From assembly GCF_048593235.1 (NCBI RefSeq), contig NC_133622.1, positions 241,893,198-241,957,197 of the forward strand: a stretch of DNA of 64,000 nucleotides. The letters are read 5' to 3'. The notes under the pieces were generated by a model. The model searched no databases. It saw nothing but the letters and a program-made list of their open reading frames with translations, and had not been told where the DNA came from. A program made the translations under genes and the position numbers. The stretch comes from Sminthopsis crassicaudata. Lineage: Eukaryota. This document shows, piece after piece, positions 10,819 through 57,463 of the stretch (within the stretch, counting starts at the first letter, position 1; each line of letters opens with the position of its first letter).

Positions 10819-13513
10819 TTCAAAAATTTATTCTCAATGTAGCCTTGTCATTGTGATCAGTCACTTAACCCTGTTTGAGTTCATTTTCTCATATGTAAAA
10901 TAAATTGAGAAGACAATGTCAAACCACTCCATTATTTTTTTCAAGGAAACCCAAAATTGGGTCACAAAAAAGTCAAATTTAACTGTAAGAACTGTACAGC
11001 ATCAATGAACATTTGGCAAATTAACAAACACAATTATACATGAGAATCTCACACTTACTCATTAGTCAATAGATGAGAAATCTGTATATTAAATATAAAG
11101 GATGAAAGTATTCTTCAGACTTCAATAAATAGAATAACTTAAATTGGTACCTTTTCACAGAGTAGATTAGTGCACACAATTTGTGTCTATATTTTAACTC
11201 AAAAAATAACAAAAGAACTATTAAAACAGTGCTTAAAAGTTAAAAGTTAGGAAAAATTGATTTTCTATAGAAAAATATTATTCTTCTCCAAGCTATGTGA
11301 AATAAAAAAAAAATCCAAAATATGGAAACCAATCAAAAAAAATCAGACCAATTTTTTTTAATGGAATGAGTTATATATCATCAAAATGCTCCAAAAATAT
11401 ATTCTGTGAGTCTGTACACAATAAATTGACATCCTAATACTTAAAAAAAAAACAGTTTTCATCTATTCAGTCATCCACAGACTATAAATGAAATAAGATT
11501 ATCAATAGGTTTATGACTTACATAGGACAGAATTCTTTGTAAAATGATAATGAAGAAATAATGGTGATGACAATAAGGTCTTAAATTGAAATGTGTCGAC
11601 TTTTGTAATTTTCAAAATGTTTTGGATGCATAATTTCAATTAATCATCAAAACAAAAGGAAGGCAAAGCTGGAAAGATGTTTTCCCTTTCACAGATGAGA
11701 AAACTAATACTTGAGAATTGCAATATCTAAATTCAGTTTATTGATTTACATTATGATGGACTTAGAACTCTAAATGAAATCCAATCATATACATCATCTA
11801 GTGTAAAACTAAGTATTTCTTTGCCTTTTCTAAGATTCAGAAATAGAGTTTGAAGATGGGTGACAATAAAAGCTTAAATGATACTGACATTCTCAGAGAA
11901 TCATAGACATTAACCTGAAAGGAATCTCATAAATTACCTATGCTAATCTCTTTATAATATAGATGAGTAAGTTAATACCCAATAAAATTAAAAAGTGCAG
12001 ATAATAAGCAAGAGAGACTCAAATATGTATTTTGTGAATATAGATTCATTGTGTTTCATACCTTTATTCAATTAAAAGAAGAGTTTGTTTTTATTTTCTT
12101 ATTGTTTTGCTTTAATAAATATTAATCCCCTGCATCTGCATATTCATTAAAAACCCAAGGATTACTACTCCATCATTTTACTTATTTTTTACATGAAATA
12201 GATTGACCAGACTCATGTCTTAGCTAAAGTTGAAATGCAGTATAATTCAACATGGTAATGTAATATGCATGCATTTGTAAGTCCATATATGTATATGCCT
12301 GTATATATGTATACATGCCAACATATACACATATAAGTGTATATATGTATGTACACATGCCAAAATATTTCTGTGTTATTTTAATGTAAAATCCTCTGTT
12401 TAATATACACTGAATTAGGATTAAATAGACAAAGAGTTCACATAAAATATTGAAATGAGGAGAAAGATTTAATGAATTGAATGTGATCATTTGTTAAGAC
12501 AGATGAATGAATCTATAAACATGGTATTTTAAACATTAACCACAAAAAATAAATATTTATGAAGAGGAAGTATCCCTCAACTCATTTATGTATTTCCTTA
12601 AATGCATGTTCAATAATCACCTGTTGTGTTCAAAGTTCATGAATATATACAAGATATGATTAACATGTAAAATGACTTAGAATCATGGAACCAACATTGG
12701 GGGGGGGAATGTATGTGTGTATATGTATACACTAGTTAGCAAATTCATTATATAAATTTCATTATGCATTCATTCATAGATGTAGAAATGTCAACTAAAT
12801 AAGATCAGGAAATATCACACAGAAGAAATAATGAAGTTGAGACAGGTCTTGAGAGAATTGGATGATTCTGATGACAGTTATTTAATAAAAATTATCCAAG
12901 CAAAAAAAACAATTTTGAACAAAGCTAAAAGGGGATAACATAAGAAACCACATTAGACTAGTACTAGGTAGGGAAATTAATGATATATCTAATTTTTTTC
13001 ATATATTCAATATCTTATATGAAAGCTATATAGCTTCTGGTATCAGGAAAGAACTACTTTGAAAATAAAAAATGTTAACTATGAAATGGTGTATATGAAA
13101 TTTATGGATTATTTCAAAGTTTTTACTAGATTCCCTCTCTTAGATCTATTTCCTTTTCATCCAAATATACAAGAAAGGAAGTGATAGAACATTACTACAC
13201 TATATGATACAGAGTCAATCAATATTTAACCAAAATTCACTGAAAAATTGGTCCTTGTGACAGAGAAAATTGAATGATAACACTTAGAAGTAAACCTTCA
13301 AGAATGAAACATTAAATCCTAACTACAGAATGGAAGATTAATATATATGCATGTTTGTATATGACCTGAATGATATGGGAAATCATTTAAATAGTATCCT
13401 CTGTGTCCCCCTCTGCTCCATACTTTTTGTTTTTCTATCATAGAAACTGATGCCTTGGGAAAGAAAGTGGCTGATTCTGATAAATATTTCCACAATCAAA
13501 AGAAATTGACCAA

Positions 13514-14449
13514 ATGGAAAAGGGCAATGTTACATTAGTGCTGGAATTCATCCTCTTGGGATTTGCTGACCTTCCCAACTTCCAACATCTTCTATTTGGA
13601 ATTTTCCTAGTCATCTATCTGTGTATACTTATAGGAAATGGTCTCCTCATTGTCATTACTAAGACCAATCCTGCTCTTCAAACCCCCATGTACTTTTTTC
13701 TTGGACATTTTTCCTTCTTAGAAATTTGTTACACATCAGTTACTTTCCCTAGAATGCTAAAAGATCTTTGGACTCAGAAGAGAAATATTCCATTCCTGTC
13801 CTGTGCTATGCAAATTTGCTTCCTTTATATTCTAGGAGCTGCAGAATGCCTACTTCTGGCTGTGATGGCTTATGACAGATATGTAGCCATCTGTAAGCCT
13901 CTTTACTATCCTCTCATCATGAATCACAGGGTATGTGTTCAACTTGTTATCGCTTCCTGGATCACTGGGACTCCAGTTCAGATAGGACTCACAGTACCAA
14001 CTTTTCTCTCTGAATTTTTGTGGCCTAATAAACTCAATCATATTTTTTGTGATGCTCCACCATTACTGGAAGTTGCCTGTGGAGACACATATCAGAAAGA
14101 GCTCTCTGTTCATTTTACTGCTCTCTTTTTTGTCATGATTCCCTTTCTGTTGATATCTGTATCCTATATCAAAATCATAGCCACCATCCTGAAGCTGCCA
14201 TCAACCTCAGGGAAATCCAAAGCCTTCTCTACTTGTTCTTCTCACCTCATGGTTGTATGTTTATTCTATGGTTCTGCGAGTATTGTGTATTTGAGACCCA
14301 AATCCAGTCATTCGGCAAAATCTGACAAGGTCTTTTCTCTTTTCTATACTATTGTGACTCCAATGTTAAACCCTTTGATATATAGCCTGAGGAATAAGGA
14401 TGTAATTGCTGCAATAAGGAAAATCCTTCCAAGGTGTCGTGATTCATGA
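13514..14449 (+). CDS. OR10AG1-like: Olfactory receptor (OR-B), OR10AG1-like, open 311 aa but with an 11-codon compensated frameshift in TM4/ECL2 (function uncertain)
   Basis: All OR motifs present, but codons 161-171 read VPTFLSEFLWP instead of YQ(I/L)FSLNFCG(S/P); C169 lost; TGA>TGT stop loss adds CRDS. Confidence 0.85.
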   Translation: MEKGNVTLVLEFILLGFADLPNFQHLLFGIFLVIYLCILIGNGLLIVITKTNPALQTPMYFFLGHFSFLEICYTSVTFPRMLKDLWTQKRNIPFLSCAMQICFLYILGAAECLLLAVMAYDRYVAICKPLYYPLIMNHRVCVQLVIASWITGTPVQIGLTVPTFLSEFLWPNKLNHIFCDAPPLLEVACGDTYQKELSVHFTALFFVMIPFLLISVSYIKIIATILKLPSTSGKSKAFSTCSSHLMVVCLFYGSASIVYLRPKSSHSAKSDKVFSLFYTIVTPMLNPLIYSLRNKDVIAAIRKILPRCRDS

Positions 14450-14788
14450 ATCATATGAATATAGAGAAAAAAAATTACTGTACCCTTTACTTGTCCCATT
14501 GGTACTAAGAAATTGATTTCTGTTCTGTCATAAGACATCTTCAGTATGCTGAAAAGAAAGTATGAAAATTTATATTTTAAAATGCCAAACATTGGCCTGA
14601 AACATCCAGTTTGTTTTACAAAGCCTTGATTGGAGTGCTGAAACTGTCCTTTTTCTCAAGTGGTGTCTATTTTCAACAGAAATATCAAGTGGAACTTTAC
14701 CACATTTTGTCCTTTTGTCTTAAAAACATTCATACTTTCTCCTTCTACTCATAATTTACTTCTTTATATATTGGCCATTGTAACTATA

Positions 14789-14791
<3 letters not shown>

Positions 14792-14836
<45 letters not shown>
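14792..14836. repeat. (TG)n microsatellite
   Basis: Direct read. Confidence 0.95.
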
Positions 14837-14841
<5 letters not shown>

Positions 14842-15040
14842 CAATTCAATTAACATTTTAATTGTCCACTATGTGGCAAGAAATGGGCTAAATACTGGGA
14901 AGAAATATAAGAAAAAGAAAGATCTCAAAAGTTTAAAATCTAAAGGAGTAAGAAAATATTAAAAATAAGCTGAAGTTTGGCTAGCAATTTGGGGTGGACA
15001 CTAAGGACTCCCTAGTGCTGAAGACATGATGTTTTATGAA

Positions 15041-15131
15041 AAGAAGGAGGGAGAGAAAGAAGAGAGAGAGAGAAAAAAAGAGAGAGAGAGAGAGAGACAG
15101 AAGGAGAGAGATAGTGAGACACAGAGACACC

Positions 15132-15195
<64 letters not shown>
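15041..15195. repeat. GA-rich microsatellite, orthologous to the purine tract at 1975-2170
   Basis: Direct read; same position in the duplicated OR 3' flank. Confidence 0.9.
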
Positions 15196-15198
<3 letters not shown>

Positions 15199-16467
15199 GT
15201 ACTTCAGATCACTCTTCACACTGCATCAAGATGAACAGGCTTCTGGCTTTCCAAGAGATATTCTAATCTTTCCCCAATAAATCAGCAAAGCAATGAATAA
15301 TCAATTTTCTTGTAGATATAGCTATACAATGGTCTCTACAGTAACATCATTGCAAATTTCTGAAAGTCCCAAATGATCTTGGAAAATGTTACAAATGTTA
15401 TTTAAAAAAAAAAAATGTTACAAAGAATAAAAAAAAAAATTCCAACATGGAGTAGAAGTAGACACAATTGTAATCATACATAACCTACTAGCCACTACAA
15501 TAAAAGACCTCAGCTCTTGCAACATTATATATGGAATAACAAAATAACTAATGTGATGGCTGAAAATATCATACCCAGAAAAATTGAGAAGACAAAATGG
15601 TTGTTCAATGAATTGTGAGAGAATCCTTCCCTTCTCTACATATATGACATGTAGACAATCCCTTGCTCTTCTAATTTCTCATGATGTCATACTTTGTCCT
15701 AATCATATACTCATTTTGCTTATTTCCTTGTTTATGGAACATTATTTATTCTTTGTGTTTTTTAGAATTTTTAAGTTCTAGATTCTCTCCTTAGCCTGAC
15801 ACACAATTAAGAAAAGAAATATGTGCAAAACATTGCTATACAAGTTAAGTTTTTATATGGATATAATAATTATTAAGTAGACATTATGCTCAGCACTGGG
15901 GATACAGATACAATAAGTAAAAAAGCCCTTACCCTCAAAGAGCTTACATTTTAAAACTCAGATGAGACAACCCAACAAGGGTATTTGAGTCAGCAAAATC
16001 ACAGGTATGGTGTGTAAAGTCATAAAGCAATTCATTGACCCCTCTTTTCTAGAATGGTAGTGTTGGTTTGACTATTATTCTTAGGTAAAGTTGGCAAGTG
16101 ATTAAAGTTGGATGTAAGGGGAGAAGTTATTTCCCTCCACTAGAAATATAGCATGAAGATAGTGTAGTGAGTCTGGGCCAAGTTACCTATGGTGAATTCT
16201 TACCAATCAGAGACCAGGTGTTCAAGGAACCAGAACAGAACTAGAGTTGAAGTGCCAGATTTGGGGTTAGAGAATAAAGTAAAAAGCATTTAACTTTAGT
16301 GTTGAATTTTAGTTACCAGACTGAGCATACAGAACAGAGTCAAATTAGAAATGACTGAGTAGAAGAAATTCTAATAACATAAAGATCAAGTTAGTATATC
16401 TCCTTCAATTCATTTCCATGAAGTTGATAAAATAATACAATAGAATAAGTCCTATCAGTTCTCCAAT

Positions 16468-27430: not shown

Positions 27431-28354
27431 ATGGAAAGAAGCAATGCTACATTTGTGATGGAATTCATCCTCCTAGGATTTTCTGACCTTCCCGATTTCC
27501 AAAGGCTTCTATTTGGAATTTTCTTAGTCATCTATATGAATATACTAATAGGAAATGGACTCTTGATTATCATAACTAAGACCAATCCTACTCTTCAAAC
27601 CCCCATGTACTTTTTCCTTGGAAATTTTTCCTTCTTGGAAATCTGTTACACATCAGTCATTCTTCCTAGAATGCTGATAGACCTTTGGACTCAGAAGGGA
27701 AACATTCCATTCCTGTCCTGTGCTATACAAAATTGCTCCTTTAATATTCTAGGAGTTGCAGAGTGCTTACTCCTGGCTGTAATGGCTTATGACAGATATG
27801 CTGCCATCTGCAAGCCTCTTTACTATCCTATCATCATGAATCACAAGATGTGTGTCCAATTGGTGATTGCTTCCTGGATCACTGGTATTCCAGGTCTGAT
27901 AGGACTCACATACCAGATTTTCTCTCTGAACTTTTGTGATTCTAACAAACTCGATCATATTTTCTGTGATTCTCCACCATTACTGGAGGTTGCCTGTGGG
28001 GACACATATCAGAAAGAACTCTTTGTCCATGTTGCTGCTCTGTTTTTTGTCATGACACCCTTTCTGTTGATACTCATATCCTATATCAAAATCATCACCA
28101 CCATTCTAAAGCTTCCGTCAACCTCAGGGAAATCCAAAGCCTTCTCTACTTGTTCTTCTCACCTCATGGTTGTTGGTTTATTTTATGGGTCTGGTAGTAT
28201 TGTGTATTTGAGACCCAAATCAAGTCATTCAGCCAAATCAGATAAAGTCTTCTCTATTTTATATACAACTGTTACTCCAGTATTAAACCCTATGATATAC
28301 AGCCTGAGGAATAAGGATGTAATTGCTGCACTGAAAAAAATCCTTCCAAAGTGA
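27431..28354 (+). CDS. OR10AG1-like: Olfactory receptor (OR-C), OR10AG1-like, intact 307 aa
   Basis: Full OR motifs and cysteines; about 33 amino-acid differences from OR-A by manual count; acceptor-like CAG ends at 27416. Confidence 0.95.
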   Translation: MERSNATFVMEFILLGFSDLPDFQRLLFGIFLVIYMNILIGNGLLIIITKTNPTLQTPMYFFLGNFSFLEICYTSVILPRMLIDLWTQKGNIPFLSCAIQNCSFNILGVAECLLLAVMAYDRYAAICKPLYYPIIMNHKMCVQLVIASWITGIPGLIGLTYQIFSLNFCDSNKLDHIFCDSPPLLEVACGDTYQKELFVHVAALFFVMTPFLLILISYIKIITTILKLPSTSGKSKAFSTCSSHLMVVGLFYGSGSIVYLRPKSSHSAKSDKVFSILYTTVTPVLNPMIYSLRNKDVIAALKKILPK

Positions 28355-28969: not shown

Positions 28970-29103
28970 NNNNNNNNNNNNNNNNNNNNNNNNNNNNNNN
29001 NNNNNNNNNNNNNNNNNNNNNNNNNNNNNNNNNNNNNNNNNNNNNNNNNNNNNNNNNNNNNNNNNNNNNNNNNNNNNNNNNNNNNNNNNNNNNNNNNNNN
29101 NNN
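28970..29103. other. Assembly gap (position of the GA-rich tract in the paralogous flanks)
   Basis: Run of N. Confidence 1.
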
Positions 29104-53089: not shown

Positions 53090-54200
53090 TCAAATACTTA
53101 ACCATGGTAAGCAAAATAATAAATGTATTTTTGCCTCTTTATCTATCCCTGCCACTCTATCATTGTAGATCTCTCCCTTCATCTCTGCTACTCTTACTCT
53201 CTCTCTCTTCTCTCTATCTGTCTCCCTCTCTATTATTACCATAAATGAATATCTTTATTTTTTAAGAAAAGTAAAATGCCCTAATATTTTAATCAAATTT
53301 TCTTCTCTCTATCATTCCATTGCAAAGTATAGAATTTGGTATGTTCATCCCACAACATGCTTTATGTCCTAAATCTGAAGATGATTTTGAGATAGCAGAA
53401 CAGTGCTAAGAATGCTTGTTTTTGAATACAAGGGAAAGGGTGCAAATCCCAGCTCCCCTGCTTGCCATTTTGGCTTTGAATAAGTTATCTCCTTTCTTTG
53501 CATCTCAGTTTGCCTAAAAATAGGATGTTGTAATATATTTTATTTCTAGTTCTTCACCTTCAATTAAGGCCACTATTATTCACAGCAATTGGCCAGGTAG
53601 ACATGATTTAGCATGAATGTATATAAGAACTGGAAATAGATTATATGTAATTATATATCAATTGTTTTATTTATGTATGTGATAAATATGAACAATTATA
53701 CATAAACTTTTCCATATATGCTCACAACTATATATAGTGCATATATATATATATATAAAACACTTTACTATGTATTAATATTTGCATATATTTCATTATA
53801 TANNNNNNNNNNNNNNNNNNNNNNNNNNNNNNNNNNNNNNNNNNNNNNNNNNNNNNNNNNNNNNNNNNNNNNNNNNNNNNNNNNNNNNNNNNNNNNNNNN
53901 NNNNNNNNNNNNNNNNNNNNNNNNNNNNNNNNNNNTAATAAATGTAGCACACTATTCTGCATGTCTATGTGATGTGTAGTAAATTATATAAATATTTGTA
54001 TATATGCATGTATATCTGCTTTATATGTTTTTGTTCACATATAATGTCTACTAACAAAATTCTAGAGAATGCCTACAGATAACATGTATATGTATATATT
54101 TATTTATAATTTGCATATGTATACACACATTTACATACAGATACTCATTATATATACATTTAAATTATACATACATACTGGCACATGTATAATTATATGT
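53090..54200. repeat. Direct duplicate of about 61620-62450 (5' flank of OR-E)
   Basis: Shared AAGGGTG..AATCC.AGCTCCCCT and CCTAAAAATAGGAT (53513 vs 61962), followed by the TA-rich tract in both. Confidence 0.8.
53803..53935. other. Assembly gap
   Basis: Run of N. Confidence 1.
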
Positions 54201-56539: not shown

Positions 56540-57463
56540 TTACTTAGGAAGTAGTTTTCTCAGTGCAGCAATGACATCCTTATTTCTCAGACTGTAGATG
56601 AGGGGGTTAAACAATGGAGTCACAATAGTGTAGAAAAGAGCAAGAACTTTGCTAGATCCTGATGATTGACTGGATTTTGGCTGCAAATATGCAATACTTC
56701 CAGTCCCATAGAAAAAGAACACAACCATTAGATGAGAAGAACAAGTAGAGAAAGCTTTGGCTCTTCCTGAAGTAGAGGGCAATTTTAGGATCGTAGTTAT
56801 GATTTTGATATAGGAGGCAAGTATAAACAAAAAGGGAATTATAACAAATAGTAGAGCCACAACATGGACAGAGACCTCTATCTTATATGTGTCTGTGCAG
56901 GCCAATAGGAATAAAGGTGGGGCATCACAGAAAATATGATTGATTTTATTAGGGCCACAGAAGTTCATGGAAAAAATCTGATATGTCTCACCAATCAGGG
57001 CTGGGACCGCAGTCAACCAGGAAGCCACAACCATTTGGACACACGCTTTGTGATTCATGATGAGAGGATAATAGAGAGGCTTAGTGATTGCCACATAACG
57101 ATCATAAGCCATCACAGTCAGGAGAAGGCACTCTGCCCCTCCAAAAATATAAAGGAAACAAGCTTGTATAGCACAGGCTATGAAAGAAATAATTCTCTTC
57201 TGGGTCCAGAGATCTGCCAACATTCTGGGCAGAGTGACTGATGTGTAACAGATTTCCAAAAAGGAAAAGTTCCCCAGGAAAAAATACATAGGGGTATGGA
57301 GAGCTGGATCAGTCTTGGTTATAACAATGAGGAGGCTATTTCCTATTAGTATACTTAGGTAGATGATAAAGAAAATCCCAAAGAGAAACCCTTGGTGATT
57401 GGGAAGGTCAGAAAATCCCAGGAGAATGAATTCCATCATATTTGTGAGATTGTTCGCTGTCAT
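56540..57463 (-). CDS. OR10AG1-like: Olfactory receptor (OR-E), OR10AG1-like, intact 307 aa, convergent with OR-D
   Basis: HTPMYFFLGNFS, MAYDRYVAIT, FCGPNKINHIFCD, KAFSTCSSHL, NPLIYSLRN; acceptor tcatttccaCAG at 57480 on the minus strand. Confidence 0.95.
   Translation of the reverse strand: MTANNLTNMMEFILLGFSDLPNHQGFLFGIFFIIYLSILIGNSLLIVITKTDPALHTPMYFFLGNFSFLEICYTSVTLPRMLADLWTQKRIISFIACAIQACFLYIFGGAECLLLTVMAYDRYVAITKPLYYPLIMNHKACVQMVVASWLTAVPALIGETYQIFSMNFCGPNKINHIFCDAPPLFLLACTDTYKIEVSVHVVALLFVIIPFLFILASYIKIITTILKLPSTSGRAKAFSTCSSHLMVVFFFYGTGSIAYLQPKSSQSSGSSKVLALFYTIVTPLFNPLIYSLRNKDVIAALRKLLPK

Follow-up and report, generated by a model that had tools for sequence, protein, structure and literature searches.

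Pairs of frameshifting indels that compensate one another (pCFM) are a described class of mutation (PMC8935012; TOGA2 preprint, bioRxiv 10.64898/2026.06.30.735536), for which Biba et al. favoured a route via an uncompensated intermediate (PMC8935012). In olfactory receptors (ORs), an OR-specific second disulfide, Cys45.40-Cys45.60, has been described within ECL2 (PMC13486327). Removal of one partner of this bond, in OR51E1 C191Y, lowered or abolished surface expression, and in natural ORs that lack either of these cysteines, an N-terminal one often takes its place (PMC13486327). Here, we analyse a dunnart (Sminthopsis crassicaudata) OR gene, OR-B, in which an inserted base and a lost base together replace Cys45.40. 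We consider it likely that this is a real compensating pair of 1-base indels (+G at 13994, -G at 14022-14023), acquired in the Sminthopsis lineage by an otherwise intact OR10AG1-like gene.

In the window, which is the whole stretch of 64,000 nucleotides that was analysed, OR-B lies at 13514-14449 on the forward strand, a single-exon coding sequence of 311 amino acids plus stop that the list of open reading frames, Pfam and NCBI/UniRef identify as an OR10AG1-like class II OR. Its frame runs uninterrupted from ATG to stop and equals those of its orthologs in length, in agreement with the earlier note. The translation matches PF13853 (Pfam 7tm_4) with 158.1 bits, far above the gathering score of 27 that we used as the threshold for membership, and the paralog OR-A scores 170.2. 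It contains MAYDRYVAICxPL at the end of TM3, KAFSTCxSHL at the start of TM6 and NPxIYSLRN in TM7, as well as an N-terminal N-x-T site. Its best matches are named olfactory receptor 10AG1-like (Sarcophilus, Antechinus and others, 84-94% identity), and solved consensus class II ORs are matched with E-values of 2e-76 to 2e-96. Upstream, the polypyrimidine tract and AG splice acceptor of the coding exon (13420-13443, forward strand) are conserved with the orthologs, as is the 5′ UTR. No uncompensated frameshift, premature stop or start loss is found, and the 936 nt hold no lesion besides the indel pair. An identical 311-aa protein is present in NCBI and UniRef, located on CM109186.1 of GCA_048593235.1, so that the expectation that pipelines would count this gene as intact is borne out. 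Among the replacements specific to OR-B that can be clearly polarised, three of the four (R3K, S4G and G90R) fall in the N-terminus or ECL1. Codon 249 in TM6 (14258-14260) carries G249C in dunnart OR-B alone among the orthologs, Cys being found there in paralogs P0010 and P0014 too.

The ORF list and DNA alignment provided four standard-frame comparator paralogs in the window: OR-A (405-1328), OR-C (27431-28354) and OR-D (47024-47962) on the forward strand, and OR-E (56540-57463) on the reverse strand. All four are intact, share 77-88% DNA identity with OR-B and align with their relatives without indels. In the five-gene DNA alignment only OR-B has the extra G and one base missing between 14022 and 14024, and the corresponding protein alignment opposes VPTFLSEFLW to YQIFSLNFCG, with collinearity on both sides. 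Six runs of N, of 133-150 bases each, interrupt the window (9658-9803, 28970-29103, 40067-40216, 49065-49202, 50104-50253 and 53803-53935), none of them close to OR-B.

The inserted G at 13994 (forward strand), already recognised by comparison with paralogs in the earlier note, is the first base of the shifted stretch and is absent from the four paralogs and from three orthologs. It is flanked by A and T, outside any homopolymer context. The compensating loss had been placed at 14024-14026 and read as a C; comparison with the orthologs shows instead that a G of the ancestral GGG (TGT GGG CCT) was lost, leaving GG at 14022-14023 (forward strand), within a short G run. The added and the lost base of OR-B are thus 29 letters apart. 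Between them, DNA and protein alignments place codons 161-170 (13994-14023, forward strand) in the +1 frame, giving VPTFLSEFLW for Y/C-QIFSLNFCG. Ten codons are therefore shifted, not the eleven residues first proposed, and eight residues are altered, the T-rich sequence recreating F164 and F168; P171 is read in the normal frame. Within this stretch, comparison with the orthologs also reveals an adjacent double substitution, GA>AC, at 14000-14001 (forward strand), which in the new frame turns Asp163 into Thr163 and in the old frame would give Q162Q and I163L. The ancestral residue 163 is indeed I, and the L previously assigned to it came from reading the dunnart GA>AC in the old frame. Over the segment, OR-B and its orthologs are identical at 28 of 30 DNA positions and at only 2 of 10 residues, which is the signature of a frame shift and not of substitutions. 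The segment spans the end of TM4 and the start of ECL2, the TM4 helix covering residues 138-165 in AlphaFold2 models of both OR-B and the Antechinus ortholog.

Each indel alone would close the frame. When simulated on a devil ortholog, the insertion without the deletion leads to a stop after residue 171, the TAA found at 14026-14028 (forward strand) ending the +1 frame with a 171-aa product, and the deletion without the insertion leads to a stop after residue 207. The deletion at 14022-14023 directly precedes the TAA that would close the +1 frame. Together, +1 and -1 sum to restore the frame with ten open codons between them, as in the pCFM class. Four changes are packed into 30 nt here, whereas the branch as a whole shows about 2% change.

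At the syntenic locus we found three orthologous genes, one in Antechinus flavipes and two tandem copies in Sarcophilus harrisii. The 90% cluster containing OR-B comprises one dunnart sequence, one protein of Antechinus flavipes and three entries of Sarcophilus harrisii, the last from two tandem loci. Antechinus and devil flanks align collinearly with window positions 10819-15956 (about 5 kb) at 86-89% identity, which establishes the loci as orthologous. Ortholog DNA reads ACA T(A/G)C CAG ATT TTC TCT CTG AA(T/C) TTT TGT GG(G/T), followed by CCT or TCT, and all three orthologs are in the standard frame, with C169 and with neither indel. Orthologs carrying one indel only plus further lesions, the pattern that the earlier note had said would refute its reading, are thus absent in Antechinus and devil. 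Because the orthologs carry neither change, the pair is, on these alignments, specific to the dunnart lineage and arose after its split from Antechinus and Sarcophilus. The devil copies (L003:3001-3936 and L004:3001-3936, on Sarcophilus LR735559.1) lie about 30 kb apart, and the annotation gives the second one odd C-termini produced by splicing (326 and 332 aa) despite a plain 311-aa single-exon frame.

The clustering of the four changes would be expected if the segment had been copied in one step, by gene conversion from a shifted paralog or by a template switch. We regard this as very improbable. Even when up to 3 mismatches are allowed, the derived 16-mer has no second match in the window, inverted copies within 400 nt do not exceed 7 nt, and the shifted peptide occurs in none of 120 relatives and in no database protein fragment. 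Indeed, a search with residues 120-220 against a large protein collection returned two unrelated OR fragments, neither of them with the shifted peptide.

The evidence for both indels comes from a single assembly of one species, and at least one of them could be a long-read consensus error. If both were errors, the true gene would have a standard ECL2; if only one were, it would be a plainly frameshifted pseudogene. This artefact reading gains from the fact that, in contigs of four read runs (1,401 bases, likeness 92), positions 13958-14004 are bare in all four. However, the bare runs include two devil runs at 30-50x, recognised as such because their variants match the two devil copies. These runs must contain the region and are bare there nevertheless, so the hole is technical and uninformative. 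The deletion, GGG>GG, is a run-length change, and a contig of the Illumina-based run X1 has one base fewer than the assembly at the A8 run at 14467-14474, both of which are in keeping with consensus error. On the other side, the added G lies outside any homopolymer, the longer T runs (5-6 T) of the OR-B coding sequence are in frame, and the four other OR genes of the window are free of indels relative to their relatives. Moreover, two independent errors of opposite sign inside 30 nt are very unlikely, and errors take no account of the reading frame. On balance we consider an artefact unlikely and retain the real compensating pair as the better account. A Nanopore T2T dunnart assembly (PMC13408496) appears to be later than, and different from, GCA_048593235.1.

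Two of these contigs, both from organism A, show further features. The short-read contig of run X1 has the ancestral R3 and S4 codons (13521, 13523) where the window has K3 and G4, and carries ATC inserted after 14457; these codons, the insertion and the A8 difference are either polymorphisms or assembly differences. The contig of run X3 joins the window at 14022 (14022-14109), and its upstream part is OR-B-like and in the standard frame with GGG, with four differences that are all synonymous. We rejected it as an unshifted OR-B allele, because its downstream part diverges by about 3% and it has variants in common with a third devil paralog; in view of this divergence, it probably derives from a close paralog.

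If the pair is real, the receptor may nevertheless be dead, the second indel being a chance hit in a young pseudogene whose open frame hides the loss. We hold this to be a serious possibility, although short of probable. The selection acting on the remainder of the gene bears on it directly, and all figures given here omit codons 160-172. Dunnart and Antechinus differ by 23 synonymous and 9 non-synonymous changes, with an NG86 omega of 0.11 and a dS of 0.123, which is about the divergence of the flanks. In a branch model (our own GY94 implementation, 8 sequences), omega on the dunnart branch is 0.15 and matches the 0.226 of the background (LRT p = 0.46), with a profile interval for the dunnart branch of about 0.045-0.43, and omega = 1 is rejected on this branch (p = 0.0005). 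The computation of dN/dS outside the segment, which had been suggested in the earlier note, therefore reveals constraint, and not the relaxation to an omega near 1 that would mark a pseudogene on the OR-B branch. If loss of function means an omega of 1, the neutral share of the branch is at most about a quarter, and a loss younger than that would be compatible with the data. The constraint implies that the pair is either young or tolerated, two cases that the omega test does not separate.

Three further observations speak against a dead receptor: the 936 nt without other lesion, the position of the compensating base inside the only 30-nt stretch that avoids a stop, and the loss of the 169-189 bond elsewhere in the subfamily, where it is tolerated. 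Against this, a genome contains well over a thousand OR loci, and it is plausible, by our own rough estimate, that about one pseudogene with two lesions has been compensated by chance.

The cysteines of OR-B define what the shift removed. Cys97 (Cys3.25, 13802-13804) and Cys179 (Cys45.50, 14048-14050), both Cys in 115 of 115 relatives and both encoded on the forward strand, are kept, so that OR-B retains the two cysteines of the TM3-ECL2 disulfide. C169 (Cys45.40) is replaced by Leu. Cys189 (Cys45.60, 14078-14080, forward strand) is seen in the alignments to be kept with its partner gone, leaving the intra-ECL2 pair incomplete, and the N-terminus contains no Cys. The loss of C169 with retention of C179 and C189 had been correctly noticed beforehand, and C97 can be added to the cysteines kept. 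The same observation had presented C169-C189 as a conserved ECL2 disulfide of ORs. This holds in so far as it corresponds to Cys45.40-Cys45.60 (PMC13486327), but the bond is not obligatory: among 115 OR10AG1-like relatives, Y169 is found in 7 and C189 is missing in 6. A marsupial orthologous group carries Y169 (P0088, P0095, P0098, P0103, P0110 and P0114, from devil, bilby, koala, wombat and opossum). From opossum to wombat, this group mostly keeps C189 and mostly has no N-terminal Cys, and its spread indicates that the ECL2 disulfide has long been absent in intact genes. In a dasyurid group (P0010, P0029, P0031, P0012), C189F is found with C169 kept, except that P0012, from Antechinus, has neither cysteine. 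As relatives without C169 or C189 exist, loss of C169 alone is, from this survey of relatives, no mark of a dead gene in the OR10AG1-like subfamily.

The unpaired C189, with no N-terminal Cys to join it, may still weigh for loss of function, given that OR51E1 C191Y loses surface expression (PMC13486327). The other new residues weigh in the same direction. V161, P162, L165, S166, E167, L169 and W170 each occur in 0 of 115 relatives, so that seven of the eight new residues are unprecedented among them. The sole exception is T163 (3 of 115), which owes its presence to the GA>AC change alone. Among the replacements are a Pro within the final turn of TM4 and a Trp for G170, and four residues that are each conserved in some 90% or more of the relatives (Y161, L166, C169 and G170) have all been replaced. 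AlphaFold2 models built on 102-row alignments reached a pLDDT of 61 for OR-B and 52 for the Antechinus ortholog; both are poor and the control is the worse, so they give no usable comparison of ECL2.

Returning to the real compensating pair, the following path can be proposed, in which the order of events is inferred. A first indel would have closed the frame after residue 171 or 207, and the resulting null allele could have persisted, single OR genes being dispensable. The first event may have been complex and have included the neighbouring GA>AC. A second indel at a distance of ten codons, immediately ahead of the stop, would then have reopened the frame. The predicted product would be a full-length seven-helix receptor that has new sequence in the final turn of TM4 and in the five residues that begin ECL2, and in which the Cys45.40-Cys45.60 bond could not form. 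Given a real pair, function and a young cryptic pseudogene seem to us about equally probable. All three outcomes named in the earlier note, a cryptic pseudogene, a frameshift-rescued receptor and an assembly artefact, keep some probability. We propose only tentatively that OR-B encodes a working receptor, with a TM4-ECL2 junction made in one stroke by frame shift and with neither the Cys45.40-Cys45.60 bond nor an N-terminal Cys. If so, OR-B would be a natural example of a receptor with a remodelled lid above its odorant pocket, and its tuning might be altered.

Provided that the pair is real and that the receptor works, the locus offers a natural test of how much loss in ECL2, the lid of the odorant pocket, an OR can bear, and it allows direct comparison with 94%-identical orthologs in which the loop is of the standard form. 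A dead receptor would show that tallies of intact OR genes which rely on open frames contain concealed losses. As one of more than a thousand such genes, and with both its type of mutation and the absence of this cysteine in ORs already on record, OR-B has a modest general significance.

How, then, does OR-B compare with the systems from which we started? The receptors OR51E2, OR52M1, OR5L1/2, OR2AT4, OR4D10 and OR10A7 studied by Muto et al. (2026, PMC13486327) resemble it in that one partner of the ECL2 disulfide is missing and the TM3-ECL2 bond is retained. In those receptors, however, an N-terminal cysteine pairs with the orphan ECL2 cysteine, whereas OR-B has no N-terminal Cys; moreover, they lost their cysteine by substitution, OR-B by a frame shift that rewrote seven neighbours too. 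A further comparison is offered by the marsupial Y169/F189 relatives (P0088, P0095, P0098, P0110, P0010, P0029, P0031 and P0012), which belong to the same subfamily, lack the bond and mostly have no N-terminal Cys. Unlike OR-B, they differ by single-residue changes that leave the YQIFSLxF-G motif otherwise intact, and they are conserved across marsupial orders, whereas the state of OR-B comes from one assembly of one species.

As a mutation, OR-B agrees with the routine class of TOGA/TOGA2, in which compensating frameshifts over short stretches are treated as non-inactivating (bioRxiv 10.64898/2026.06.30.735536). That class is an annotation rule which makes no functional claim, and the benchmark gene set of the preprint excludes olfactory receptors. 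With the pCFM survey (PMC8935012), OR-B shares two indels of lengths that are not multiples of 3 and that restore the frame, the absence of a stop between them, a short novel peptide, nearby substitutions that may soften the change, and a likely path through an uncompensated intermediate. The survey does not mention olfactory receptors, and its high-confidence set was obtained under stringent quality filters, whereas the derived state of OR-B is known from a single species. OR-B also differs in the place of its shifted stretch, which hits a structurally defined motif rather than a poorly conserved region.
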